In this document: one piece after another, positions 34,499 through 64,000 of the stretch
How the letters are laid out: each line of letters begins with the position of its first letter
Position numbering within the stretch: the stretch's first letter is position 1
From: Macrostomum hystrix
Lineage: Eukaryota > Animalia > Platyhelminthes
Assembly (NCBI GenBank): GCA_950097015.1
Contig: CATNEN010000008.1
Span: forward strand, 124,001-188,000
DNA length: 64,000 bases
Direction: 5' to 3'
Notes under the pieces: model-generated
Databases searched by the model: none
Told to the model about the DNA's origin: nothing
What the model saw: only the letters and a program-made list of their open reading frames with translations
Translations under genes and position numbers: made by a program

Positions 34499-34932
34499 GA
34501 CATTACTCTACTCCGCAGCTGTGGAACTTTCCAATGGACACCCAGCTGTGCCCGTTGGAGATCGGTAGCTATGGTTTCGCCTCATCCGACCTGGAATTCG
34601 CCTGGATGAGCAGCCGGTCAGCTGTACTGCTCAACAGCCAGATGATGCTTAACGAATTCGAACTGCCTGATGTTCGCACGGGCAGCTGCAGTAAAGTGTA
34701 CAGCACCACTGGCCAATTCGCTTGCCTATTTGTTGAATTTAAATTGGTGCGAAAATTCGGATTCTATCTGATCTACACCTACCTGCCCTCGATTCTGGTT
34801 GTGGCCATCTCCTGGATCTCGTTCTGGATCGACTACAAAGCTGTGCCGGCTAGGATCACCATCGGCCTTCTGTCCGTACTGGCCCCGATGACACAGGCTG
34901 CAGCCACTTTCCAGATGAAACTCCGTTGCTAA

Positions 34933-37900
34933 TGGCGCCCAGTCCTTAGAGATTGGCGCCCAGTACATAGAGATTGGCGCCCAGTCCTTGAAGATTGGCG
35001 CCCAGTACTCAGAGATTGGCGCCCAGTACTCAGAGATTGGCGCCCAGTACTTAGAGATTGGCGCCCAGTCCTTGAAGATTGGCGCCCAGTACTCAGAGAT
35101 TGGCGCCCAGTACTCAGAGATTGGCGCCCAGTACTCAGAGATTGGCGCCCAGTACTCAGAGATTGGCGCCCTGTACTCAGAGATTGGCGCCCAGTACTCA
35201 GAGATTGGCGCCCAGTACTCAGAGATTGGCGCCCAGTACTCAGAGATTGGCGCCCTGTACTCAGAGATTGGCGCCCAGTACTTAAAGATTGGCGCCCAGT
35301 ACTCAGAGATTGGCGCCCAGTACTTAGAGATTGGCGCCCAGTACTTAGAGATTGGCGCCCAGTATTCAGAGATTGGCGCCCAGTACTCAGAGATTGGCGC
35401 CCAGTACTTAGAGATCGGCGCCCAGTACTCAGAGATTGGCGCCCAGTACTTAGAGATTGGCGCCCAGTACTCAGAGATTGGCGCCCAGTACTTAGAGATT
35501 GGCGCCCTGTACTCAGAGATTGGCGCCCTGTACTCAGAGATTGGCGCCCAGTACTTAGAGATTGGCGCCCAGTACTCAGAGATTGGCGCCCTGTACTTAG
35601 AGATTGGCGCCCTGTACTCAGAGATTGGCGCCCAGTCCTTGAAGATTGGCGCCCAGTACTCAGAGATTGGCGCCCAGTACTCAGAGATTGGCGCCCAGTA
35701 CTTAGAGATTGGCGCCCAGTCCTTGAAGATTGGCGCCCAGTACTCAGAGATTGGCGCCCAGTACTCAGAGATTGGCGCCCAGTACTCAGAGATTGGCGCC
35801 CAGTACTCAGAGATTGGCGCCCTGTACTCAGAGATTGGCGCCCAGTACTCAGAGATTGGCGCCCAGTACTCAGAGATTGGCGCCCAGTACTCAGAGATTG
35901 GCGCCCTGTACTCAGAGATTGGCGCCCAGTACTTAAAGATTGGCGCCCAGTACTCAGAGATTGGCGCACAGTACTTAGAGATTGGCGCCCAGTACTTAGA
36001 GATTGGCGCCCAGTATTCAGAGATTGGCGCCCAGTACTCAGAGATTGGCGCCCAGTACTTAGAGATCGGCGCCCAGTACTCAGAGATTGGCGCCCAGTAC
36101 TTAGAGATTGGCGCCCAGTACTCAGAGATTGGCGCCCAGTACTTAGAGATTGGCGCCCTGTACTCAGAGATTGGCGCCCTGTACTCAGAGATTGGCGCCC
36201 AGTACTTAGAGATTGGCGCCCAGTACTCAGAGATTGGCGCCCTGTACTTAGAGATTGGCGCCCAGTACTCAGAGATTGGCGCCCAGTACTTAGAGATTGG
36301 CGCCCAGTACTTAGAGATTGGCGCCCAGTACTTAGAGATCGGCGCCCAGTACTTAGAGATTGGCGCCCAGTACTCAGAGATTGGCGCCCAGTACTCAGAG
36401 ATTGGCGCCCAGTACTCAGAGATTGGCGCCCAGTACTTAGAGATTGGCGCCCAGTACTCAGAGATTGGCGCCCAGTACTCAGAGATTGGCGCCCAGTACT
36501 CAGAGATTGGCGCCCAGTACTTAGAGATTGGCGCCCAGTACTCAGAGATTGGCGCCCAGTACTCAGAGATTGGCGCCCAGTACTTAGAGATCGGCGCCCA
36601 GTACTCAGAGATTGGCGCCCAGTACTCAGAGATTGGCGCCCAGTACTCAGAGATTGGCGCCCAGTACTCAGAGATTGGCGCCCAGTACTCAGAGATTGGC
36701 GCCCAGTACTTAGAGATTGGCGCCCAGTACTCAGAGATTGGCGCCCAGTACTTAGAGATTGGCGCCCAGTACTTAGAGATTGGCGCCCAGTACTTAGAGA
36801 TTGGCGCCCAGTACTTAGAGATTGGCGCCCAGTATTCAGAGATTGGCGCCCAGTACTTAGAGATTGGCGCCCAGTACTCAGAGATTGGCGCCCTGTACTC
36901 AGAGATTGGCGCCCAGTACTCAGAGATTGGCGCCCAGTACTTAGAGATTGGCGCCCAGTACTTAGAGATTGGCGCCCAGTACTTAGAGATTGGCGCCCAG
37001 TACTCAGAGATTGGCGCCCAGTACTTAGAGATTGGCGCCCAGTACTCAGAGATTGGCGCCCAGTACTCAGAGATTGGCGCCCAGTACTCAGAGATTGGCG
37101 CCCAGTACTTAGAGATTGGCGCCCAGTACTCAGAGATTGGCGCCCAGTACTTAGAGATTGGCGCCCTGTACTTAGAGATTGGCGCCCAGTACTTAGAGAT
37201 TGGCGCCCAGTACTCAGAGATTGGCGCCCAGTACTTAGAGATTGGCGCCCAGTACTCAGAGATTGGCGCCCAGTACTCAGAGATTGGCGCCCAGTACTCA
37301 GAGATTGGCGCCCAGTACTTAGAGATTGGCGCCCAGTACTCAGAGATTGGCGCCCAGTACTCAGAGATTGGCGCCCAGTACTTAGAGATTGGCGCCCTGT
37401 ACTTAGAGATTGGCGCCCAGTACTTAGAGATTGGCGCCCAGTACTTAGAGATTGGCGCCCTGTACTTAGAGATTGGCGCCCTGTTCTTAGAGATTGGCGC
37501 CCTGTTCTTAGAGATTGGCGCCCTGTTCTTAGAGATTGGCGCCCTGTACTTAGAGATTGGCGCCCTGTTCTTAGAGATTGGCGCCCTGTACTTAGAGATT
37601 GGCGCCCTGTTCTTAGAGATTGGCGCCCTGTTCTTAGAGATTGGCGCCCTGTTCTTAGAGATTGGCGCCCTGTTCTTAGAGATTGGCGCCCAGTACTTAG
37701 AGATTGGCGCCCAGTACTTAGAGATTGGCGCCCAGTACTTAGAGATTGGCGCCCAGTACTCAGAGATTGGCGCCCAGTACTTAGAGATTGGCGCCCTGTA
37801 CTTAGAGATTGGCGCCCAGTACTTAGAGATTGGCGCCCAGTACTCAGAGATTGGCGCCCAGTACTTAGAGATTGGCGCCCAGTACTTAGAGATTGGCGCC

Positions 37901-38708
37901 CAGTACTTAGAGATTGGCGCCCAGTACTCAGAGATTGGCGCCCAGTACTCAGAGATTGGCGCCCAGTACTCAGAGATTGGCGCCCAGTACTCAGAGATTG
38001 GCGCCCAGTACTTAGAGATTGGCGCCCAGTACTTAGAGATTGGCGCCCTGTACTTAGAGATTGGCGCCCAGTACTTAGAGATTGGCGCCCAGTACTCAGA
38101 GATTGGCGCCCTGTTCTTAGAGATTGGCGCCCTGTTCTTAGAGATTGGCGCCCTGTTCTTAGAGATTGGCGCCCTGTTCTTAGAGATTGGCGCCCAGTAC
38201 TTAGAGATTGGCGCCCAGTACTTAGAGATTGGCGCCCAGTACTTAGAGATTGGCGCCCAGTACTCAGAGATTGGCGCCCAGTACTTAGAGATTGGCGCCC
38301 TGTACTTAGAGATTGGCGCCCAGTACTTAGAGATTGGCGCCCAGTACTCAGAGATTGGCGCCCAGTACTTAGAGATTGGCGCCCAGTACTTAGAGATTGG
38401 CGCCCAGTACTTAGAGATTGGCGCCCAGTACTCAGAGATTGGCGCCCTGTACTCAGAGATTGGCGCCCAGTACTCAGAGATTGGCGCCCAGTACTCAGAG
38501 ATTGGCGCCCAGTACTTAGAGATTGGCGCCCAGTACTTAGAGATTGGCGCCCTGTACTTAGAGATTGGCGCCCAGTACTTAGAGATTGGCGCCCAGTACT
38601 TAGAGATTGGCGCCCAGTACTTAGAGATTGGCGCCCAGTACTTAGAGATTGGCGCCCTGTACTTAGAGATTGGCGCCCTGTTCTTAGAGATTGGCGCCCT
38701 GTTCTTAG
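34933..38708. repeat. 21-bp satellite AGATTGGCGCCCAGTACTCAG (~180 copies) in the channel intron
   Basis: Tandem array; TCCTTGAAG variant pairs recur 651 bp apart; source of the 1243-aa artefact ORF. Confidence 0.98.
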
Positions 38709-40329
38709 ATAAGGCGTGATTCTGATCTTAATTTATGTGAATGCACAGAATGCATGATTCTGGAACCAATACGAATTTCTCGCTCTCGGAAATCTAAGCC
38801 TGATTCTTGGAAATTAACTCCTAATTCTTAGAAACTGGACTCTTAGTCTTAAAATGGTACTTGATTCTTAGAATAACATAACTTCTTTTAAAATGACCCT
38901 TGATTCTAAGAAATATACACTTTCCTAGAAATATAACTTGATTCTTTGAAAACTAGACGACACTTTAAGAATTTGACGCCTCCTTTTTAGAATCAAGAGA
39001 AAATTTTTAGAAATTCGTTATTGATTCTAGCTAACTTTATAAAAAGTAATTACTAAGTAATGAATACGAGACTAGCATATATTCTTAGCCCTTTATATCC
39101 TCAATTTTAAAAAATGTGCTAATCAAATCAAGCTTCGATGTGATAGGACCACGGAGTGTCCTCTTCATCAATAAATCAGCACAGATAATGTTTTCTAACC
39201 AAATAGATCAAGTAAGTGAAAAATTTGAAAATTGAATTTTCGCTCGCATCTCGATAATAGTGCTGAATTAAGACTGTGAAAAAATATATACTTAATCGAG
39301 TATATTTGGCTATCAGGCAGGCCAGCCGTTGAGTCCATTGAGACCCATTCTGAGTTTCAGACGATGCCAAGATAATCTGATAGCAGATTTACGGAGTCTG
39401 TAAATCGATAAATCATTGCATAGTGCACTGCTGGATGCTTCTTAAAAGCATCTGCGGATTTATACAGAGGGATGAGTTTTAATTTCATCAGGATTATCGT
39501 GCATGTGTATTTGAGTAGCTGCACTGGACTCAGATTCGAGCTTGGAACCAATTTCGATAGTCTCATCCCAGTCTATGCCGCCTGTCTCTCTGTTTCTGTC
39601 TCCTATGCGACTGATTCTGTAGCCTAAAGCAATAACAATTATTGACCAAAGGACCGCTAGAAGAAGGACGGGACACTTTGTTTCTTGGAAAAAAATTAAA
39701 GGCAGATTTTTCGCGGAAAAATACACTAACGAGATAGGAACTTTTCATGCTTTTCACATTTAAATGTTGATAACTTTTTATTGAAAGCAGATCCATTGCT
39801 GTTATTTCAACATAGCATAGCAACCAAGCAGAAATATAATTTACCTACAACTTAGCCTACTGATCTGTTAATGAAAATTTCTAAATTATTCTGGTAAAAA
39901 CAAACTGGTAAACAGAATTATTTGAAGCTAGCACTATATTTTATAGTCTCTTGCACTCCCAAAATAACATAATTTTTTTCAGAGGGGCTGTTGCAACTGA
40001 CGCACCATTTCGTGATAGTCGACACGCTCAAGTTTCTATATACGAGCCGTATATAAATATTAATAATCGGAAACAAAAGGCTTGTTTCCAAATAGCTCGT
40101 AGTTTTGTTGTTTTTGGAAGATTAACGCATTTTTAAACACTGCTGCAAGGGCTGGCATGTAGAGAAAGGGAAGAATATAGCTCGTAAAATCGATATTTTC
40201 ACAGATGAAGGTTATTTTTTGTCGAAAACCAGCCTCCTAAACGTTTTCTAGGAAACGTGGTTTCCCGTCTTTCCAACTAGTCCTTCGATTTTTTGGCATT
40301 ATGCAATATCATTCCAATATCTAGCTTAC

Positions 40330-40795
40330 ATTATAATAATAATGATTTTAGGCCCCGGATATAGGATATGATTAGGATTAGAATGATTAGAATGATTAGG
40401 ATATAATAATAGTAATAATAGTTGGGCTGTGGGCTGTGGGCAAAAGAGGGCTGTGGGCAATGGCACATCATTTGGTGACAGTAGACCAGCAGTCTGCGAG
40501 GAGGCAATTCTGCCCATTCCGCTGACTCCTGAGCACACAAACACACGGATACTGTACGCATGCAGGCACACGCTCAAATACGTAGGTGCGAACATCTGCC
40601 CTGACTTTGTCATCGTCAGGCAGTGTACACTTCACTGTTCCTTGGGGGTTGGCCCTCAGGAGCGTAAATTACACGACAAGCCCCCAAGCCTTCTCTCCGT
40701 GTCTTCGGAGAGAATGAATGCGGCCTCGCTGCGGAATCGAGCTCAGGGACCTTGGCGCGAGAGGCAAACGCGTTAACTGCTCTGCCACCGACCCC
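40330..40795 (-). mobile_element. tRNA-derived SINE family A, copy 1
   Basis: Minus-strand head GGGGTCGGTGGCAGAGCAGTTAACGCG...CTCGATTCC (A/B-box-like); body closely similar to copies at 43463-43840 and 61026-61385; (ATT)n-like tail. Confidence 0.85.
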
Positions 40796-43462: not shown

Positions 43463-43840
43463 AATAATAATAATAATAATAGTTGCAGGAGGGCTGCGGG
43501 CAATGGCACATCATTTAGTGAAATTAGTGACACTAGACCCGCAGCCAGCGAGGAGGCAATTCTGCCCATTTCGCTGACTCCTGAGCACACACGCACACAG
43601 ATACTGTACGCAGGCATACGCTCACACAGGCGTGTACCTCTGCCCTGACTTTCTCATCGTCAGGCAGCATACATTTCACTGTGCCTTGGAGGTTGGCCCT
43701 CAAGGGCGTAAATTGCACGACCAGCCCTCAAGCCTTCTCTCCGCGGCTGCGCCCCAAATAAAAGTGGCCTCGCCGTGGAATTTAACTAAGGGACCTTGGT
43801 GCGAGAGGCAAACGCGATAACCGCTACGCCACCGACCCCC
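43463..43840 (-). mobile_element. tRNA-derived SINE family A, copy 2, with TSD
   Basis: Same head and body; (ATT)n tail; flanked by AATATTTGCGTATTAA / AATATGTGCGTATTAA (16-bp TSD, 1 mismatch). Confidence 0.9.
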
Positions 43841-50736: not shown

Positions 50737-53700
50737 ATGACTCTAGACAAAAATGAGCCAGCGAAAGTGTTTCGCATTAAAATTGTCAGCATGGGCAATT
50801 CTGACACAGGAAAGGTAGGTTAAACATTTTATTATATCTGCATAATATAATACTTTCGGTAGTGCGTTACCAAATGCCAACTCAAAAACTTTCCACTCTC
50901 CAGAGTTGCATTATTAAGCGCTACTGTGAGAAACGATTTGTACAGAAGTACCTGATGACAATCGGCATTGATTTCGGCGTTACCAAGTAAGTAATGCGTA
51001 TTCAGTTGCACGCCTGCATCAAATAAGGGATGTGGCTCAAGATCCATCAACTAGGGGATGTTGCTCAAGATCCATCAATTAGGGGATGTTGCTCAAGATC
51101 CATCAATTAGTGGATGTTGCTCAAGATCCATCAATTAGTGGATGTGGCTCAAGAAACATCAAATAGGGGATGTGGCTCAAGATCCATCAATTAGGGGATG
51201 TTGCTCAAGATCCATCAATTAGGGGATGTGGCTCAAGATCCATCAATTAGGGGATGTTGCTCAAGATCCATCAATTAGTGGATGTTGCTCAAGATCCATC
51301 AATTAGTGGATGTGGCTCAAGAAACATCAAATAGGGGATGTGGCTCAAGATCCATCAATTAGGGGATGTTGCTCAAGATCCATCAATTAGGGGATGTGGC
51401 TCAAGATCCATCAATTAGTGGATGTGGCTCAAGATCCATCAATTAGTGGATGTGGCTCAAGATCCATCAATTAGGGGATGTGGCTCAAGATCCATCAATT
51501 AGTGGATGTGGCTCAAGATCCATCAATTAGGGGTTGTGGCTCAAGATCCATCAATTAGGGGATGTGGCTCAAGATCCATCAATTAGGGGATGTGGCTCAA
51601 GATACATCAATTAGGGGATGTGGCTCAAGATACATCAATTAGTGGATGTGGCTCAAGATCCATCAATTAGGGGATGTGGCTCAAGATACATCAATTAGGG
51701 GATGTGATTTAGGATCCATCGAAAATAGGATTTGATTTAAGATCCATTCAATAGAGGATTGATTTAAGATCTTAGGGGCTGTGACTAAAAAGCCCATAGA
51801 TTCGCTCGTGATTATCGTGATTCCCCTTTTCTAACAGAGTGACTGTCGGTGATCGCGATGTAAAGGTGAACATTTTCGACTTCGCTGGTCACCCAGTATT
51901 CTACGAGGTTCGTAACGAGTTTTACCGTGACGTACAGGGCGTCATGCTGGTCTATGACGTCACTAATCGAGCCAGCTTTGAGTCGTTGGATGCCTGGATT
52001 AAAGAGATGAAGTCTGAACTGGGCGCCAAGCATAGTGCCGAGTTCGATTCGGCATTCTTTGTTGTCTGCGCTAATAAGGTAAGACAAATTTCAGGCAGAC
52101 ATTCAGTCCCATCTTCAGACTCCATTCAGCCCAATCTTCAGGCTCCATTCAGTCTAATCTTCAGACTCCATTCAGCCCAATCTTCAGACTCCATTCAGCC
52201 CAATCTTCAGACTCCATTCAGCCCAATCTTCAGACTCCATTCAGCCCAATCTTCAGACTCCATTCAGCCCAATCTTCAGACTCCATTCAGCCCAATCTTC
52301 AGACTACATTCAGCCCAATCTTCAGACTCCATTCAGCCCATCTTCAGACTCCATTCAGCCCAATCTTCAGACTCCATTCAGCCCAATCTTCAGACTCCAT
52401 TCAGCCCAATCTTCAGACTCCATTCAGCCCAATCTTCAGACTCCATTCAGCCCAATCTTCCGACTACATTCAGCCCAATCTTCAGGCTACATTCAGCCCA
52501 ATCTTTAGACTACATTCAGCCCAATCTTCAGGCTACATTCAGCCAATCTTCAGACTCCATTCAGCCCAATCTTCAGACTCAATTCAGCCCAATCTTCAGA
52601 CTCCATTCAGCCCAATCTTCAGACTCCATTCAGCCCAATCTTCAGACTCCATTCAGCCCAATCTTCAGACTCCATTCAGCCCAATCTTCAGACTACATTC
52701 AGCCCAATCTTCAGACTCCATTCAGCCCATCTTCAGACTCCATTCAGCCCAATCTTCAGACTCCATTCAGCCCAATCTTCAGACTCCATTCAGCCCAATC
52801 TTCAGACTCCATTCAGCCCAATCTTCAGACTCCATTCAGCCCAATCTTCCGACTACATTCAGCCCAATCTTCAGGCTACATTCAGCCCAATCTTCAGACT
52901 CCATTCAGCCCAATCTTTAGACTCCATTCAGCCCAATCTTCAGGCTACATTCAGCCAATCTTCAGACTCCATTCAGCCCAATCTTTAGACTACATTCAGC
53001 CCAATCTTCAGGCTACATTCAGCCAATCTTCAGACTCCATTCAGCCCAATCTTCAGACTCAATTCAGCCCAATCTTCAGACTCCATTCAGCCAATCTTCA
53101 GACTCCATTCAGCCCAATCTTCAGACTCAATTCAGCCCAATCTTCAGACTCCATTCAGCCAATCTTCAGACTACATTCCCATTTCCTGCTCCAGGTGGAC
53201 AAGAAGCAGGCAAGGCTGGTTGATGAACTAGAAGGTCGCCTTTGGTCCGACGCTCGCGGCTATCCTTATTTCGAGACATCGGCATTGACCGGCGATGGCG
53301 TCGGCGAGATGTTCAAATGCCTCTTCGACGGCGTAGTGGAGGCGGTGGTGTCTGGCAAGAAGCCACAGGCCATTCCAGTTCAGCTGGGCTACAATACTGA
53401 CCAGATTGAAGCTATTAAAAAGCTGAAGAATGGCAAGGATAACTATGAGAGACTGGGCATCACTCAGTATGCCACTAAGTGAGTCTGGTCTATTGTGCTG
53501 CCGTCCACTACCGTTCTAGACCCATCCACTCTCCCTGTCCACTCTCCCCACCATCCACTCTCCCTGTCCACTCTCCCCACCATCCTCACCCTGCCTACTC
53601 TCCCCACCATCCTCTCATCCTGCCTACTCTCCCCACGATCCTCTCACCCTGCCTACCCTCCCCACGATCCTCTCACCCTGCCTACTCTCCCCACGATCCT

Positions 53701-54814: not shown

Positions 54815-55140
54815 AGAGAGTGAGGTGGCTGCTGCCGGAATGAGGGGTTAAGAGAGGCAGAGGGTGAGGTGGCTGCTGCCGGAATGAGGGGTTAGGAGAG
54901 GCAGAGGGTGAGGTGGCTGCTGCCAGAATGAGGGGTTAAGAGAGGCAGAGGGAGAGGTGGCTGCTGCCGGAATGAGGGGTTAAGAGAGGCAGAGGGAGAG
55001 GTGGCTGCTGCCGGAATGAGGGGTTAGGAGAGGCAGAGGGTGAGGTGGCTGCTGCCGGAATGAGGGGTTAGGAGAGGCAGGGAGTGGGGTGGTGCTACGA
55101 TAATGTGGTTTAGGAGAGGCAGGAGTGAGGTGGTGCTACT
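54815..55140. repeat. 44-bp minisatellite GAGGTGGCTGCTGCCGGAATGAGGGGTTAAGAGAGGCAGAGGGT
   Basis: Spacing 54822 to 54866; ~6-7 copies between DNAJC27 and UQCRQ. Confidence 0.92.
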
Positions 55141-55285
55141 GAAAGATATTATTTGTGAAGCTTTTCGGAACTATTTAAATGTTTTCCACCGAATTTCAGC
55201 GAGTTGAACCATTGGCTTAGACTAATTCTAAGCAGACAAATTCCCTCCGGTTCCAACAGCAAACAAACAATCTGATAAACAAGCA

Positions 55286-55558
55286 ATGGGCCACAAGGCT
55301 TTCGGCCAGGGCATGGCATACGTGCGCGGCATCATTTACTACGGTGTGTCGCCCAACGAGCTGCACCCGTTTCGCGGCATGCTGACCAAGGCTCCCTGGA
55401 ACGGCCTGCGTCGAGTGAGTAGCGAATTCTTTCGCGTTGTTCCGCCATTCGTTGGCGCCTATCTCCTAATCGCCTGGGGCAAGGATGCCAACGAGAAGAC
55501 CAAGCGCAAGGATCCGGCATTCTTTGATGCCGAGGCCGCCACGAATGGCGAGCTGTGA
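55286..55558 (+). CDS. UQCRQ: Cytochrome b-c1 complex subunit 8 (QCR8), intronless, 90 aa
   Basis: MG..FG..AYVRGIIYYGVSPNELHPF...N.LRR...FFRVVPPF...YL...WG......KRKDPA.F. Confidence 0.93.
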   Translation: MGHKAFGQGMAYVRGIIYYGVSPNELHPFRGMLTKAPWNGLRRVSSEFFRVVPPFVGAYLLIAWGKDANEKTKRKDPAFFDAEAATNGEL

Positions 55559-56152
55559 ACTCTGAAACTAAAAAAGCGCTACACCCTACTATTGTAAGTA
55601 GTATTAGTGAGTAGCATGTGACTCTAGGTTAATATAAGCACAGCAGGACTTCGGTTTCCAGCTAACTAATTTAGTGTGTTAATCTTGTGCGCTTGTGCAA
55701 CAATGATCACTGATGTAATGTGAAAATAAACTAGTTTAGACTACTCACTCCCTCCTGTCACCATTTTAACCGATTTAGAATATTTCAAATAACTATTTCG
55801 TGTACTGTCTTACTTGTATCATCACAAGAAAACTGCAGAATTAGCTCTATATAACAAAACAGGGCTTATAATATTGAAAATTATTGAAGCCATTGTATAA
55901 ATGATCTTGGCTCTGACTTCTTTCTCGGTATTTGGTCATTTTTAGTTCACAGATAACAAAAATAGGAAATCGTGGCAATGAGAATTGTTAAAACGGCCCA
56001 ATTTAGGTCCACCGCTGTGAAGGTCATTTGTGATTAACGAACGAGGCACTAATCTTTAAGTAAAAAATCTGCTTTAACAAAACGAACGATAAATTCCAAC
56101 CTACAGCATATATAGAAACATAAATGTATAGAAATTATAATATTTGTAGTAT

Positions 56153-56395
56153 ATGATTACGCCTGCCCAAATCGGGCCAGATGTGCAGCCGACTGCACAG
56201 CCGCAGCTATTGCGCGGCGCATCTGAAGGCTGCGTACGGCTGTTCAGTCCATGGACTGGGGAGCCGACACTCGCTGAAGCAATACAGAGTGTCTTGCTAA
56301 ATGATACAAATTCTTCCTTATCAATGCTTAATACAAAACTTGTGAAGACAAGAATCGAACCCCCGACCTTCAAGTCGTATTACTTGTACATGGAG
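56153..56395 (-). mobile_element. SINE family B, copy 3 (reverse orientation)
   Basis: Minus strand: AAGGTCGGGGGTTCGATTC head, then GCAAGACAC..ATTGCTTCAG..CCCCAGTCCATGGACTGAACAGCCGTACGCAGCCTTCAGATGCG..GGCTGCACATCTGGCCC..GTAATC, matching copy 1. Confidence 0.8.
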
Positions 56396-57279
56396 TCGGT
56401 CGTCTCGCTTCCAAGCAGGGCTGGATGCGCCACGTCAAGCTGTCCATTGGTCAGCGTCCAATTTTTAGCGTTAGGAGCATGGTCTTCATAAAAATTCCAT
56501 TGACTTCGCTTTTATACTATTTGTTTAACTGCTACCACTACCATTAAAATTTCCCCATTGAATTTGTGTAAATGGATTTCCATTCCACTTCTGTTTCTAA
56601 GTAATATACTTATCCTAACAACCCTTTGAATGCTATCCCCATAGTTCAGGCTATACTCTTATAATCCATAGAAAACCGGTAAAAGTACAAGTACATTAGC
56701 TGTCGTTCATTTTTTATCCTATATTGCAAACATTTGCATGTATACGCTCGTACTACTATAAACATGATCATATTGAGTAGTATATATGCACAAAAAACTG
56801 CTCCAATCGTTAAAAGTCAGTATCTTACATGGCAATCTGTTTAACCAGCATGTCGAGCGGAAATCTCAAACACTGATTTCTAAATAGACCAACGCTGTAA
56901 CTAACTTTTAATACGAGAAGACTAATGCACATGTACACACTCAAACCCTGGATCTGGATTTTGCAACTAAATCTTTACTGTCCTAGAAGTAGATAAAGTG
57001 TTAAATATTCACGTATTTATTTGCTTGCGTGAATCCAACCAGATGTGCCAATGGCATTGGACTGGCTTGTGTTTACAATAAAATCTTACGCCTTGCCATT
57101 TCTTAGATTTTTACCCCGAAATTCCTACAAGACTAGCTTTGAACTGCTCACATACTGTCAACTTGTTTAGATTCTGGAACCGGTAACGGTGAGTTGCTAA
57201 AGTATTTTTAGTTGCACTTCCCAATCCGAAAGATTCTTAAATCTATTATCTTCCCAATTCCCAAACTTTAAAGCCTCAC

Positions 57280-58445
57280 AATCACTAAAAGCTTCACAAC
57301 CCCAAGCTTCACAATCCCCAAACTTCACAACCCCCAAACTTCACAATCCCTAAGCTTGACAATCACCAAACTTCATGGTCCCCAAACTCCAAAATCCCCA
57401 AGCTTCACAATCCCCAAACTTCACAATCCCTAAGCTTGACAATCACCAAACTTCATGGTCCCCAAACTCCAAAATCCCCAAACTTCACAACCCCCAAACT
57501 TCACAATCCCTAAGCTTGACAATCACCAAACTTCATGGTCCCCAAACTCCAAAATCCCCAAGCTTCACAATCCCCAAACTTCACAACCCTAAGCTTCACA
57601 ATCCCCAAACTTTACGATCCCCAAACTCCAAAATCCCCAAGCTTCACAATCTCCAAGCTTCACAATCCCAAAACTTCACAATTCCCAAACTTCACAATTC
57701 CCAAGCTTCACAATCCCCAAGCTTCACAATCCACAAGCTTCACAATCCCAAAACTTCATAATCCCTAAACTTCAAAATTCCCAAGCTTCACAACCCCAAG
57801 CTTCACAATCCCCAAACTTCACAACCCCAAGCTTCACAATCCCCAAACTTCACGATCCTCAAACTCCAAAATCCCCAAGCTTCAAAACCCCAAGCTTCAC
57901 AACCCCAAGCTTCACAATCCCCAAACTTCACGATCCCCAAACTCCAAAATCCCCAAGCTTCACGATCCCCAAACTCCAAAATCCCCAAGCTTCACAATTC
58001 CCAAGCTTCACAACCCCAAGCTTCACAATCCCCAAACTTCACAACCCCAAGCTTCACAATCCCCAAACTTCACGATCCCCAAACTCCAAAATCCCCAAAC
58101 TTCACGATCCCCAAACTCTAAAATCCCCAAGCTTCACAATTCCCAAGCTTCACAACCCCAAGCTTCACAATCCCCAAAAATCACAACCCTAAGCTTCACA
58201 ATCCCCAAACTTCACGATCCGCAAACTCCGAAATCCCCAAGCTTCACAATCTCCAAGCTTCACAATCCCAAAACTTCACAATTCCCAAACTTCACAATTC
58301 CCAAACTTCACGATCCCCAAACTCCAAAATCCCCAAGCTTCACAATCTCCGAGCTTCACAATTCCCAAAACTTCACAATCCCAAAACTTCACAATCCCAA
58401 AACTTCACGATCCCCAAAACTTCACGATCCCCAAAACGTCAAAAT
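57280..58445. repeat. Complex ~16-17-bp minisatellite (CCCAAACTTCACAATC / CCCAAGCTTCACAATC) upstream of ilvD
   Basis: Degenerate tandem repeats between a donor-like GTGAGT (57189) and the acceptor preceding the ilvD ATG. Confidence 0.9.
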
Positions 58446-58530
58446 TCTCAAAACATAAAACTATGTACACTGCCTATGCGAACAAGATTGAAATCCCGAC
58501 ATTCAAAATCCCCGCAACCTGATTGTCCAG

Positions 58531-61500
58531 ATGGCCTCCTGCTCCTCTGCCTCCTCTGCGGCCTCTCTGCCGCGCCTCCACTCGTCGCTAGTCGTGGACG
58601 GTCCCGACCGGGCCGGCGCCCGCGCCATGCTACGCGGCGTAGGCCTGAGCAGTGCGGATTTCACCAGACCCCAGGTGGGCGTTGTGTCCTGCTGGGCCAC
58701 TGTGACGCCGTGTAATTTGAATCTGCGCGAGCTGCAGGATCTGGCCGGCGAGTCCGTTCGGGAGGCCGGCCTAGTGCCTATGCACTTTAACACCATCACG
58801 GTGAGTGACGGCATCAGCATGGGCACGCCCGGGATGCGGCTGTCCTTAATTAGCCGCGAGGTGATCGCCGACTCGGTTGAAACCGTCGCCCAGGCTGAAG
58901 GCTTCGACGGTCTGGTTTGTCTAGGCGCCTGCGACAAGAACATGCCTGGCATGGCCATGGCGATGCTCCGCCTGAACCGACCGGCTTTGTTTGTCTATGG
59001 CGGCAGCATAATGCCCGGCTGCGGCCGCGACGGCGCCAAGGTCGACATTCGATCTGTCTACGAGGCCATCGGAGGCTATCACAAAGGCAGCGTCAGCGGC
59101 AAGGTTAGCAAACATTGGAACTTTAGCAATATTATAGAAAAGTATACCCACCAGACCAATCCTTCAAAAGCCGCTCCAACCAATCGGGTCGCGCGTATCG
59201 CTTACCACCAAAGAAACTCTCTAACCCCTCGTCGCTTTTCCAGCCAATACTATGACACCTGACACAAGCCACCCCAAAAACTATCTATACCCTCGGGAGC
59301 TGCTCCAGCCAATCATATCACACCTGACATTAGCCACCCCAAAAACTATCTATACCCTCGGGAGCTGCTCCAGCCAATCATATAACACCTGACACTAGCC
59401 ACCTCAAAAACTATCTATACCCTCGGGAGCTGCTCCAGCCAATCATATAACACCTGACACTAACGACACTATGCCAAACACCCAGCTCCCATAAAACTAT
59501 CCGAGTTTCGCTTTTATTTTGAAACAGTTCTATTTGTTTTTTTAACGATAGAAATTTAAATAATCGATTTCCAACACAGCCCCAAATTAATGCAGCTTAG
59601 CAGCGGATTCGAGCTCAGGGATCTTGGTGCGAGAGGCAAACGCATCCCTTCTCCCTTCGTCTCCCCTTCGCCATCTCCCATCTAGGAGCTGTCCGACATT
59701 GAAGAATGCGCCGTGCCAGGGCCAGGCTCATGCGCCGGTATGTACACTGCCAACACAATGTCCTGCGCGCTGGAGGCAATGGGCCTCGCCCTACCCGGAG
59801 ACGCCTCGCCGCCGGCTGTCAGTGAGGAGAAGCGCAGCGAGGCGCGCCTTCAGGTTGGCGCCGCCGTTGCGAATCTGCTGCGCAAGGGAATTCGACCGCG
59901 CGACATTGTGACTTGGGAGGCGATGGAGAATGCGGCTGCCGTAGTGTCTGCTTTGGGCGGCTCAACCAACGCCTGCCTGCACCTGGTGGCCATCGCCAGG
60001 GAGGCCGGCCTCGCTGACTTCGGGCTGGACAACCTCCAGGCGGTGTTTCAACGAACCCCTGTACTGGCCGACCTGTTTCCCAGCGGGTGTCACGCCATGG
60101 CCGATTTGCACGCTGCTGGCGGACTGCGGCCGCTGCTACGGCGCCTGCTGAAAGCCGGCCTGCTACACGGATCGGCAGTAACTTGTACAGGACGTACGCT
60201 GGCTGAAGATCTGGAAGGTGTCGAAGATTATCCGGCCGGACAGAAAGTCATTAGGCCATTGTGTGAGTAATGAGTTGCGTCTTCCGACCAATCCAGAAGT
60301 CTTAAGGGTTGACCACCCCAAAATTTCTCTATCCCTTTTGGAGCCGCTTCAACCAATCAGGTCACGCTTAACAACCGCCACTCCAGAATTACTCTACCCA
60401 TTTAGGAGCCGCCTCAACCAATCAGATTACCCTCGTTTTTTCTGACCAGCCGATCCAATCAAAGCCACCGGCCACCTCGTTATCTTTCGCGGCAATCTCT
60501 GCCCGGGCGGCGCGGTTGGCAAACTAATCGGCGACGAAGGCGACAGCTTCTCCGGTCCGGCCGTGGTCTACGACAACGAGGAGGCCGCCTACGCTGGCGT
60601 CTCGCGCGGAGATGTTCAGGCCGGCCAAGTTGTTGTTGTGCGCAACGAGGGCCCTGTTGGCGGCCCCGGCATGCGGGAGATGCTGGCTGTGACTGCGGCC
60701 ATTCAGGTGAACACCTTGGCTTAGTCATTTGCAATAGAAGTCCACGGGGAGTGTTTCAATCGCCCACATTTTTCTTTTTTCTGTATCTCTTAAAATATTC
60801 AACCAGTTGCCGTGAAAATCCACACCACGGCCTATAATTTTCGGCTCTATCCGATGAAACAACTTCCAGAATCGCTAAAGAATTCAAAGATATCCAACAA
60901 TTCTCGTCGGTGTGTCTAGTGGCAAAAACCACCAATGTAGGCAAAAAGATTCTGCTCACAAAATTTCATTATGTAGTCATGTCTATTACTTTTTATCAAA
61001 TTGTATTGATTTTTGGTTGATTTATGGGGGGTCGGTGGCAGAGCGGTTAACGCGTTTGCCTCTCGCACCAAGGTCCCTAAGTTAGATTCCACAGCGAGGC
61101 CACATTTATTTGGGGCGCAGCGGCGGAGAGAAGGCTTGGGGGCTTGTCTTGCAATTTACGTCCTTGAGGGCCAACCTCCAAGGCACAGTGAAATGCACAC
61201 TGCCTGACGATGAGAAAGTCAGGGCAGATGTACACACCTGTGTGAGCGTATGCCTACGTACAGTATCTGTGTGCGTGTGTGCTCAGGAGTCAGCGAAATG
61301 GGCAGAATTGCCTCTTCGCTGGCTGCGGGTCTAGTGTCACTAAATGATGTGCCATTGCCCGCAGCCCTCCTACAATTATTATTTTTTTTTGATTTATACA
61401 CTTTTGAACCAATATGGATTCACCAGAGGTTTATAACAGAGCAATGTATCCTTGTCACCAGGCCAAGTGGTAGCTGTCGCGAAGCTATTTTGTTTCCTCG

Positions 61501-62194
61501 GGGAAAAATAGCGTAATCTTGTTGTGCCGTGCATATGCACTTTGCCCTGCTCTGTGTGTGACCCGTGTTTATGTCTGCCCCACCCCTTCCTACGCCCGTG
61601 CCTGCCTAGGTCAGGGTTTGTAAGAGTGAACTCTCGCTAGTCCCACTCCCAGGGTGGTTGGTTCTGCGAACTCTCGCGGAACCAATCAGACTTGTTAGGC
61701 CTAGGCAGGGTTGGGCTGGGACCTGGGTGTCTCGGGCGGTGGACCCTATCCCATCTCCCTCCGTCGGCCATTAGGCCAAGACACAACACTTTTTACTGTT
61801 AAGGATTTTGGCGAAAAATGGCGAAAGATTTTTTATTTCACATTTTTCCTAGGGCCGCGGCTTAGCTGGCCGGGTGGCTCTCATCACGGATGGCCGGTTC
61901 TCCGGTGCCACCAAGGGCTTTGTTGTAGGTCACGTGACCCCAGAATCGGCCATCGGCGGACCAATAGCCGCCCTGCGCACGGGGGATCTGATCGACATCG
62001 ATGGTCCCGGCCGGAGCATCAGCGTCAGACTGGGCGAGGCTGAATTCGCCACTCGAATGCGAAATGCGGCCGCGGTGGCGTCGGCTGCGGATACCGCAGC
62101 GCTGGCTCATCCGCCAGGCGGTTCGCGCACCTCCGTGCTGGCCAAGTACAGACGGCTGGTCAAGCAGGCCGATGAGGGCGCCATTGTGGCCTGA
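58531..62194 (+). CDS. ilvD: Dihydroxy-acid dehydratase (IlvD/Edd family), 4 exons, ~582 aa
   Basis: Exons 58531-59103, 59686-60262, 60450-60706, 61853-62194 (1749 nt, phases 0/1/0, all GT-AG). Motifs [102 protein letters not shown]. Confidence 0.97.
59255..59460. repeat. 65-bp tandem triplication in ilvD intron 1
   Basis: CTATCTATACCCTCGGGAGCTGCTCCAGCCAATC at 59281, 59346, 59411. Confidence 0.9.
59603..59645 (-). mobile_element. Fragment of the SINE family A head in ilvD intron 1
   Basis: GGATTCGAGCTCAGGGATCTTGGTGCGAGAGGCAAACGC matches copies 1 and 2 (e.g. 40734-40772). Confidence 0.7.
61026..61385 (+). mobile_element. tRNA-derived SINE family A, copy 3, in ilvD intron 3, with TSD
   Basis: GGGGGTCGGTGGCAGAGCGGTTAACGCGTTTGCC...; ATT tail; TTGATTTAT on both sides. 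Confidence 0.9.
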
Positions 62195-62239
62195 TCTGCA
62201 GACTCCGAGGGACTTTCGGGCTAATGGCCAACTCGAGTG

Positions 62240-62660
62240 GATTATTGACCGAGTCGAGTACTTTTCGGGTAATGACCGACTCGTGTACTTTTGGGCGAAT
62301 GACCGACACGTGTACTTTTGGAGTAATGACCGACTCGTGTACTTTTGGAGTAATGACCGACTCGTGTACTTTTGAAGTAATGACCGACTCGTGTACCTTT
62401 GGGCTAATGACCGACTCGTGTACCTTTGGGCTAATGACCGACTCGTGTACCTTTGGGCTAATGACCGACTCGTGTACTTTTGGGGCAATGACCGACTCGT
62501 GTACTTTTGGGGCAATGACCGACTCGTGTACCTTTTGGCTAATGACCGACTCGTGTACTTTTGGGGCAATGACCGACTCGTGTACTTTTGGGGCAATGAC
62601 CGACTCGTGTACCTTTGGGCTAATGACCGACTCGTGCACTTTTGGGGATATGACAGACTC
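62240..62660. repeat. 27-bp minisatellite GTACTTTTGGGCGAATGACCGACTCGT just downstream of the ilvD stop
   Basis: ~15 copies; 9-aa periodic ORFs. Confidence 0.95.
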
Positions 62661-63211
62661 GGTTAGATCATTTCTGACTAAATAATTTCTGGTATTTACT
62701 CCAAATTGAGAACTAACTAAGCTACCGGCTAACTTAAAGTCAATTTTCGAATCGACTAAGTTTTATGTAACTATTTTCAATTTTCTTAGCTCCAATACAC
62801 TACTTAGATTCACTATGAGTAGTGAGAGTGTGCAATCTATTGTTACTTTCATAATTTCCGCTAGCTAACGAATAAGAAGTGTGATTTTAAATAAAAAAAA
62901 TTTTTGTGACACAAGGAATCAAATGAAAACAATGTTACCTTTCACAGGTTAGTACAAATATACTAAAGCAAAACTTTCCATGCTTTCTACTTTTTTTTCA
63001 ATTAAGTCACATTTATCATTCAAATGTGAATGTGAATGTTTTACAATTAGCTACAGCAATACCAAACCCATAATACAGCCACCCACCTGCCGACTTCCTA
63101 ATGAAATTTATTCGATCCAAAATTAAAACTTTTTTTTGCTCGCAACAAAATTGCCGACAAAAAGGACAGCACAGACTGCCGATTTCATTGTGTTCTCCCT
63201 TCTAGCCCCGT

Positions 63212-63246
63212 TTTCTGATTGGCCGCCGATACCGCCAGCCAATTGG
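63212..63246 (+). promoter_or_regulatory. Candidate CCAAT boxes upstream of Dbx
   Basis: CTGATTGGCC and GCCAATTGG ~110-145 nt upstream of the ATG at 63358; function is inference. Confidence 0.3.
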
Positions 63247-63400
63247 ACGGATCGATTTCTTTATTAACCATTTAGCGGCCCTACAAACGGAACTGGGACA
63301 GTTGGAATTTATATAGTCTCACATATTCCATTGCTTTACAACTCGAACTCTTGAAAAATGGATTTGTCACCAATCGCTTTATCTCCCGCTTCCGCCCCCG

Positions 63401-63864
63401 TTGGATTTGCGGTACCAGCATCAGGTCCAGCTTCACCGTCAGCCTCATCAGTTCCAAGCGACTGCCGACATTCAAATCAGCGGCGTCAGCAGCGGACGCG
63501 TTGTCAACAGCGGCGTCCTGCGCCGCGCCGTGTTCAGCGACGCCCATCGACGCGGCCTTGAGAAGGCCTTCCAGCGCCAGAAGTACATCGGCAAGCCGGA
63601 CCGCAGGCTTCTGGCCGATCGTCTGGGTTTAGGCGACTCTCAGGTAAGCTGATGTCGCCTGGGCTTGTGAGACCGGTCTGGAACTGCTCTCCGGTCCAAA
63701 ATTGCTTTCCAGATAAGTGCCAAATTGATGCCGTTTAGCGCCACTCTAATCTGCAGGTGAAAATTTGGTTTCAGAACCGTCGCATGAAATGGCGCAACTC
63801 CAAGGCGGCGGAGGCGGACTCGATGAACAACGATGCGAGCCGGACTAGCCAGGTGCAATCTTGA
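63401..63864 (+). CDS. Dbx: Dbx-class homeobox transcription factor (5' end unresolved)
   Basis: GVLRRAVFSDAHRRGLEKAFQRQKYIGKPDRRLLADRLGLGDSQ|VKIWFQNRRMKWRNSK; intron 63644-63756 at the common helix-3 position; Dbx-diagnostic RRAVFS, KPDR and WRNSK. Confidence 0.92.
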
Positions 63865-64000
63865 GAACAGAGAACTGCTAGGAATAAGTCTTCTTCTTCA
63901 GCTACTGCCGCTGCTGCTGCCGCTGCCGCTGCTGCTGCCTCTTCTGTTGCCACTGCTGCTGCCTGTTCTGCTACTCATAATTCTACTGTTGCTGCTCCTG

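Follow-up and report, generated by a model that had tools for sequence, protein, structure and literature searches.

A spliced and expressed gene for a bacterial-type dihydroxy-acid dehydratase in the flatworm Macrostomum hystrix

Introduction

Dihydroxy-acid dehydratase (DHAD) catalyses a step of valine and isoleucine synthesis that animals normally do not have, and animals are textbook auxotrophs for the branched-chain amino acids. How, then, does a complete gene for this enzyme come to stand among host genes in the genome of a flatworm, and what might the animal do with it? The gene in question (IlvD, EC 4.2.1.9) occupies positions 58531–62194 of a 64,000-nucleotide window of Macrostomum hystrix DNA (contig CATNEN010000008.1, positions 124,001 to 188,000 of the forward strand); the window is the whole stretch that was analysed, and all positions given here refer to it. 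We conclude, with a probability of about 0.8, that the locus is a functional gene of the animal and encodes a bacterial-type short-form DHAD, that a common ancestor of two or more Macrostomum species gained it from a bacterium by horizontal gene transfer, and that it has since been domesticated. The gene is linked to host genes, interrupted by spliceosomal introns, expressed, and placed with non-animal sequences in a phylogeny. A first-pass annotation of the window had already proposed a domesticated horizontal transfer, and the proposal is upheld by the bacterial affinity of the protein, an approximately unbiased (AU) test of tree topologies, splicing, expression and the host flanks. The transfer is old, and no donor lineage is singled out.

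Gene structure and splicing

The DHAD gene runs on the + strand from an ATG at 58531 to a TGA at 62192–62194 and is divided into four exons, whose spliced coding sequence of 1749 nt encodes 582 amino acids with zero internal stops. Exon 1 (58531–59103; codons 1–191) holds the start codon, the TPCN motif with Cys61, an SDG motif and GACDKNM, which contributes Cys134, Asp135 and Lys136. PGSCAGM with Cys207 lies in exon 2 (59686–60262; codons 192–384, ending on the first base of codon 384) and GPGMREML with Glu460 in exon 3 (60450–60706), while exon 4 (61853–62194) encodes DGRFSG with the catalytic Ser486, a lineage-specific insertion of ~12 residues and the stop codon. The three introns, on the same strand, are all of the GT..AG type: intron 1 (59104–59685; 582 nt; phase 0), intron 2 (60263–60449; 187 nt; phase 1), which opens with GTGAGT, and intron 3 (60707–61852; 1146 nt; phase 0). 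The first-pass annotation had described a complete reading frame of ~582 codons with three introns and had named the motifs around the three cysteines and the serine; the exact coordinates and the RNA joints bear out the former, and all four motifs were found, as TPCN (Cys61), GACDKNM (Cys134), PGSCAG (Cys207) and DGRFSG (Ser486).

Four public RNA runs from one 2020 study contain ~48% of the sampled words of a 3.8-kb stretch around the gene, which is near the exonic share. In each of the three runs examined, one contig of 1.9–2.0 kb spans the four exons and lacks precisely the 582, 187 and 1146 nt that lie between them, each bounded by GT..AG, the first joint linking 59103 to 59686. These contigs differ from the genome by a single letter (59868 T>G) and extend past the stop codon over 62195–62238 (+), the start of the 3′ untranslated region. 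The gene is thus spliced and its mRNA is present; being assembled contigs, the RNA data bear on splicing and mRNA presence, not on expression level. In addition, run X1 (organism A, 2024), from a separate study, contains a 255-nt piece of exon 2 (59923–60177) identical to the window, so that the gene is also present in an independent sample.

Family assignment and conserved residues

Profile searches assigned the protein to the IlvD/EDD superfamily and, within it, to the short-form DHADs. The four exon pieces matched Pfam models collinearly with E-values of 1e-26 to 1e-60, exons 1 and 2 covering positions 1–141 and 144–315 of PF00920 (ILVD_EDD_N) and exons 3 and 4 positions 8–93 and 96–191 of PF24877 (ILV_EDD_C), and the NCBIfam dihydroxy-acid dehydratase models were also matched in order. 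NF002068 (short dihydroxy-acid dehydratase, PRK00911) was the best NCBIfam model, followed by the ilvD equivalog TIGR00110. Scores for the window protein are sums over four separate exon pieces, and its two orthologues from Macrostomum lignano, the UniProt entries P0001 (A0A1I8IYW7; 578 aa; 84% identity to the window protein) and P0270 (A0A1I8ISI1; 632 aa; 88%), were scored at full length. Against NF002068, with a cut-off of 644, the window exons reached ~680 bits, P0270 729 and P0001 663; the corresponding values against TIGR00110, with a cut-off of 618, were ~603, 653.5 and 593. The model for the E. coli-type long IlvD (NF009103; [4Fe-4S], ~616 aa) gave 383–420 bits for the orthologues and ~405 for the summed window exons, short of its cut-off of 710, and the sugar-acid and 6-phosphogluconate dehydratase models NF009559, TIGR03432 and TIGR01196 (cut-offs 882, 808 and 708) gave 190–344 bits only. 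DHADs, among them 9ix7, 6nte, 6ovt and the plant enzyme 5ze4, are the nearest proteins of solved structure, and the exon pieces matched plant DHAD structures with E-values of 1e-47 to 1e-50. The likeness to proteobacterial IlvD noted in the first-pass annotation therefore stands as far as bacterial affinity is concerned, but the protein is not the E. coli-type long IlvD; it is of the short type common to many phyla.

All residues expected of a short-form DHAD were found, namely the three cluster cysteines, the CDK site that provides for Mg2+ and the carbamyl-lysine, and, within the SGxx motif, the catalytic serine. Across the 48 non-Macrostomum rows of the alignment, 68 columns show conservation of 96% or more, and of these the window protein departs from the family at one (A501S) and retains the other 67; the retained set includes Cys134-Asp135-Lys136, Cys207, Glu460 and Ser486, and Cys61 lies in TPCN. 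A published account of DHADs (PMC9314677) covers the cysteines of the cluster, the catalytic serine and the motifs that tell the classes apart, the branched-chain [2Fe-2S] class being marked by CDKNM at the second cysteine, G(A/S)CGG at the third and SGGT, promiscuous DHADs by SGAT, and sugar-acid or promiscuous enzymes by CDKTT. CDKNM in the window protein is of the branched-chain DHAD type. Its third-cysteine motif reads GSCAG, a variant shared by 2 of the 25 bacterial neighbours in the tree described below, and its SGxx motif reads SGAT, so that the motifs do not all point to one class.

The best-supported reading of the conserved residues and model scores is that the window protein would be an active DHAD yielding 2-keto-isovalerate and 2-keto-3-methylvalerate. 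Homology to the nearest relatives with solved structures makes it probable that the enzyme is oxygen-tolerant and of the [2Fe-2S] type. The enzyme is also probably cytosolic, because no N-terminal presequence is encoded in exon 1; as the first-pass annotation had noted in missing a long mitochondrial presequence, the N-terminus is collinear with bacterial N-termini, aligning with them residue by residue, whereas the fungal and plant enzymes have N-terminal extensions.

One feature is private to the worms. An Ala-rich insertion of ~12 residues at residues ~541–553 (exon 4, ~62070–62110) is present in all three Macrostomum proteins and in none of the bacterial, fungal or plant rows. The C-terminus reportedly matters for activity in related sugar-acid dehydratases, according to one study.

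Bacterial affinity of the protein

The search for relatives started from the full-length protein of M. lignano. Among the matches listed, identity falls from 100% directly to 55% or less, and every named match outside Macrostomum among the best 120 is bacterial (Opitutaceae, Limisphaera, Verrucomicrobiota and Candidatus Mycalebacterium). The best 80 loci among 185,579 GTDB species genomes are bacterial as well (80/80), and they include Verrucomicrobiota, Gammaproteobacteria (Steroidobacteraceae, Woeseiaceae, SAR86), Dadabacteria, Acidobacteriota, Lentisphaerota, Kiritimatiellota and Omnitrophota. As for unnamed proteins, 117 of 119 top matches share 72% identity or more with a row that the redundancy filter had retained, none of the best 60 clusters at 50% identity is nearer to Macrostomum than it is to the named rows from bacteria, plants or fungi, and an ESM Atlas look-up with P0001 returned bacterial DHAD clusters only. 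The window protein is 53–58% identical to bacterial proteins, compared with 42% to a fungal DHAD (Wallemia).

A maximum-likelihood tree was inferred from 51 rows and 576 columns under LG+C20+F+G4 with posterior mean site frequencies (PMSF), with very long or fragmentary rows and the loci L010 and L044 excluded. The eukaryotes in it besides Macrostomum were seven basidiomycetes and two plants, with no algae, protists or rotifers. The three Macrostomum rows grouped together (100/100), their stem measuring 1.2 substitutions per site, and this group was sister to a bacterial clade of 25 rows (95/96), the union of the two being recovered at 99/95. The seven fungi (99/97) and the two plants fell on the other side, together with proteins of Chitinophaga and Planctomyces, and the plant-like unnamed protein P0009 grouped with the plants, apart from Macrostomum. 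When Macrostomum and Fungi were forced into one clade, the likelihood dropped by 100 log units and the topology was rejected (AU p = 7e-8). All 25 rows of the bacterial clade share TPCN and GMREML with the window protein; in fungi and plants the counterparts are NPCN or NTCN and GMPEML. The phylogeny with bacterial, fungal and plant IlvD that the first-pass annotation had called for thus joined the worm protein to bacteria, at 99/95, and rejected a fungal clade.

Host context and composition

The gene lies between animal genes on one contig. UQCRQ (complex III subunit 8) is encoded 3 kb upstream by a single 90-aa open reading frame (ORF) at 55286–55558 (+), with a Pfam UcrQ match of 8.6e-24. 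Downstream, at a distance of 1.2 kb, a homeobox gene at 63401–63864 (+) consists of two homeodomain exons (~63401–63643 and ~63757–63864) with a GT..AG intron between them; its homeodomain resembles those of Dbx, and it is putatively of that class. Of the animal flanks claimed by the first-pass annotation, UQCRQ and a homeobox gene are present, the latter as a Dbx-like candidate. Other animal ORFs within the window encode Vma12, a periphilin C-terminal domain, an EF-hand protein, a Ras-family protein, FKBP and C2orf69.

The composition of the DHAD gene is host-like, because its GC content at third codon positions (GC3) equals that of neighbouring host genes, at 0.715 against 0.74 for UQCRQ, 0.74 for the homeobox gene and 0.78 for the EF-hand gene. 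The GC content is 0.64–0.66 in the DHAD exons and 0.46–0.48 in the introns. Intron 3 contains a dispersed repeat resembling a short interspersed nuclear element (SINE) at ~61026–61400, where RNA-contig depth runs into the thousands. The repeat core at 61034–61073 (+) recurs at 40750–40789 (−) and 43794–43833 (−), with 0 chance matches expected, and these two further copies in the window substantiate the host SINE sequence that had been claimed for the introns. Three spliceosomal introns, a host-like codon composition and host repeats within the introns are the marks of domestication at this locus.

By eye, the intron-3 repeat is tRNA-like; an Rfam scan of 55000–64000 gave no match, and the repeat was not tied to a tRNA family. 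A stretch of intron 1 (~59593–59680) is also strongly represented in RNA contigs.

The 5′ end of the mRNA

A splice acceptor AG at 58529–58530 (+) directly abuts the start codon, and the RNA contigs are not collinear with the genome 5′ of 58530. There they add 42 (X4) or 128 (X2 and X3) letters that were not placed on 58450–58529, and the contig letter adjoining the start codon is the genomic G at 58530; in X4, 43 non-collinear letters (the 42 and this G) thus precede the start codon. The leader, known here by its length and its terminal G, is probably a spliced leader added by trans-splicing. A 43-letter leader with a terminal G fits a spliced leader better than cis-splicing from UQCRQ. Two UQCRQ donors were considered for the latter. 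The consensus donor at 55414/55415 would supply an in-frame piece of exactly 129 nt, yet that piece ends in A where the contig has G, and the donor at 55343/55344, the sole G|GT donor there, is out of frame.

Orthologues in M. lignano

The DHAD proteins of M. lignano are present solely as automatic UniProt entries, and one of them bears on the age of the insertion. Among the matches listed, these two entries are the sole near relatives of the window protein, which has no entry of its own in that database. P0270 is named cytochrome b-c1 subunit 8: its residues 1–52 are UQCRQ, 85% identical to the UQCRQ of the window, and are fused in frame to a whole DHAD. This fusion model suggests that UQCRQ is the neighbour of DHAD in M. 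lignano too; if the model mirrors the genome, the two genes would be adjacent there and the insertion would be older than the split of the two species. The fusion itself may be a real read-through or cis-spliced chimeric mRNA, or the product of a model that runs two adjacent genes together; the window species showed no in-frame UQCRQ donor that agrees with the RNA contig. P0001 begins without Met, with 'TA', the same two residues that follow the fusion point in P0270, which is as expected if it had been leader-trimmed from a trans-spliced transcript.

Alternative explanations

Several observations weigh against the reading of the gene as a branched-chain DHAD taken over from bacteria. Forcing Macrostomum onto fungi, plants and their allies costs 11.7 log-likelihood units (p = 0.02), a weak result for a group that was named after the tree had been seen. 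The long Macrostomum stem stands beside the bacterial clade and not within it, long-branch effects are possible, no donor phylum is singled out, and eukaryotes are thinly sampled in the tree. As to function, the SGxx motif reads SGAT, as in promiscuous DHADs, whereas the bacterial neighbours in the tree have SGGS or SGGT, and no partner ketol-acid reductoisomerase (KARI) or acetolactate synthase is known in this genome, in which no search for them was made.

The phylogenetic points could be accommodated if the gene had come not directly from a bacterium but through an unsampled eukaryote, such as algal or protist prey, that carries a bacterial-type short IlvD. Macrostomum worms are fed diatoms in culture, and the long unbroken stem, the lack of a specific bacterial sister and the thin eukaryote sampling would all suit such a donor. 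Yet M. lignano is the sole eukaryote among the named top matches, none of the 60 nearest clusters lies closer to Macrostomum, and the plant-like P0009 goes with the plants, so we consider an intermediate of this kind quite unlikely. Vertical inheritance from an opisthokont or other eukaryotic ancestor, with retention in Macrostomum alone and loss in other animals, would make sense of the introns and the host-like composition, and fungal and plant DHADs are of the short type too. It is highly improbable in view of the 100-unit penalty for a clade with Fungi, the lower identity to the fungal enzyme, the signature motifs of the bacterial clade, and the fact that no other animal protein is near the worm protein among the best 120 matches or the best 60 clusters. 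Bacterial contamination or a chimeric assembly, for which one could cite exons richer in GC than the introns and the whole window, is barely conceivable: it is refuted by the spliced RNA contigs, which confirm three spliceosomal introns, and it also conflicts with the host repeat in an intron, the host genes on both sides on one contig, the host-equal GC3 and the P0270 model, which implies a UQCRQ neighbour in M. lignano as well.

A different kind of alternative accepts the transfer and concerns the role of the protein. It may no longer be a branched-chain DHAD, having been recruited to a different substrate, whether 2,3-dihydroxy or sugar acid (glycerate, gluconate or pentonates), or to a non-catalytic role. 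Such a change would account for a lone pathway enzyme in an animal, given that no partner enzymes are known in this genome (where none were searched for), and SGAT in place of SGGT, the long stem and the lineage-specific 12-residue insertion are all compatible with it, as is the presence of sugar-acid dehydratases in the IlvD/EDD family. On the other hand, the protein has CDKNM and not CDKTT, the L-arabinonate, xylonate and Edd models score far below the ilvD models, and the retention of 67 of 68 family-invariant residues speaks against a loss of catalysis. We regard a change of role as unlikely and retain the reading of a domesticated, functional DHAD of bacterial origin.

A possible mechanism and role

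How a bacterial gene might have come to be used in this animal can be outlined as a model. The acceptor abutting the AUG would receive the worm's spliced leader, and this would allow a promoterless foreign gene to be expressed, possibly from the UQCRQ transcription unit. In the 582-aa protein, Cys61, Cys134 and Cys207 would hold an Fe-S cluster, and Asp135, the carbamylated Lys136 and Glu460 would bind Mg2+. From 2,3-dihydroxy-isovalerate or 2,3-dihydroxy-3-methylvalerate, Ser486 would then take the proton at C2 and the cluster the hydroxyl at C3, which would give the 2-keto acids. Animal branched-chain aminotransferase can turn these 2-keto acids into valine and isoleucine, and the worm's own enzyme would do so here.

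Extended to the whole animal, the model holds that Macrostomum makes valine and isoleucine with the captured enzyme, either de novo, aided by a foreign KARI and an enzyme that forms acetolactate, or from dihydroxy-acids salvaged out of diatom or bacterial food, the gene having been switched on by landing behind UQCRQ and a spliced leader. This full scheme is speculative and, we think, unlikely. If it were true, Macrostomum would meet part of its own need for two 'essential' amino acids. The roles put forward in the first-pass annotation were likewise hypothetical: partial branched-chain amino acid synthesis, symbiont complementation or action on another dihydroxy-acid. M. lignano, a model species amenable to transgenesis and RNAi, has an orthologue, so that the role of a lone captured pathway step can be put to a direct test in an animal.

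Relation to known systems

The closest counterpart of the worm protein is the bacterial short-form IlvD, with which it shares a full-length collinear match of 53–58% identity, the TPCN, CDKNM, GSC(A/G)GM and GMREML motifs, the catalytic serine and an N-terminus free of a presequence. Unlike its bacterial counterparts, the worm gene is an animal nuclear gene with three spliceosomal introns and a long private branch, and its product differs by SGAT where they have SGGS or SGGT, by GACDK where they have GGCDK, and by the ~12-residue insertion near the C-terminus. Fungal Ilv3 and the plant chloroplast DHAD (5ze4) belong to the same family and short form, but they differ from the worm protein in their N-terminal extensions, in having NPCN or NTCN with GMPEML, and in forming a separate clade.

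Among animals, the bdelloid rotifer Adineta ricciae has foreign KARI and DHAD transcripts, with which, it was proposed, a pathway leading to valine and isoleucine becomes complete (Boschetti et al. 2012, PMC3499245). Macrostomum resembles it as an animal expressing a horizontally acquired DHAD. The rotifer has a foreign KARI alongside the DHAD, whereas no KARI is known in Macrostomum, where none was searched for, and the two animals belong to different phyla; the two acquisitions are presumably independent. Compared with the rotifer report, Macrostomum adds the genomic context, the introns and a second species. The literature searched contained no paper tying Macrostomum or any flatworm to DHAD or to this transfer, and no report of a conserved, expressed DHAD from an animal genome apart from bdelloid rotifers. 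The Macrostomum DHAD is a further domesticated bacterial metabolic gene in an animal, a kind that is already known.

With respect to expression, the Hydra gene flp offers a precedent for a transferred gene that became part of a trans-spliced operon (Dana et al. 2012, PMC3273482). As in Hydra, the foreign gene here follows a host gene on the same strand, with an acceptor at its start, in an animal that trans-splices. In contrast to flp, an operon at this locus is a hypothesis, the spacer measures 3 kb, and the only link to UQCRQ is the M. lignano fusion model. The locus is nonetheless a clean case of a naturalised bacterial gene, with introns, host codon usage, host repeats and an acceptor exactly at the start codon in a trans-splicing species.

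Other features of the window

Tandem arrays surround and enter the DHAD gene. A 16-bp unit repeated 72 times (57292–58435) ends 95 bp before the start codon, a 65-bp unit repeated 3.4 times lies inside intron 1 (59239–59462), and a 27-bp unit repeated 15 times (62246–62661) begins 52 bp after the stop codon. At 51839–53482, the ORF of a Ras-family exon (Pfam Ras, 1.2e-18) continues into another array, of a 23-bp unit repeated 47 times (52100–53178). Further away, a GC-rich region at 34988–38719 (+) contains a 1243-aa ORF, overlapped by an antisense ORF of 346 aa at 34929–35969 (−); both have weak coiled-coil or repeat-type Pfam matches alone, and the region is probably a repetitive coding exon.

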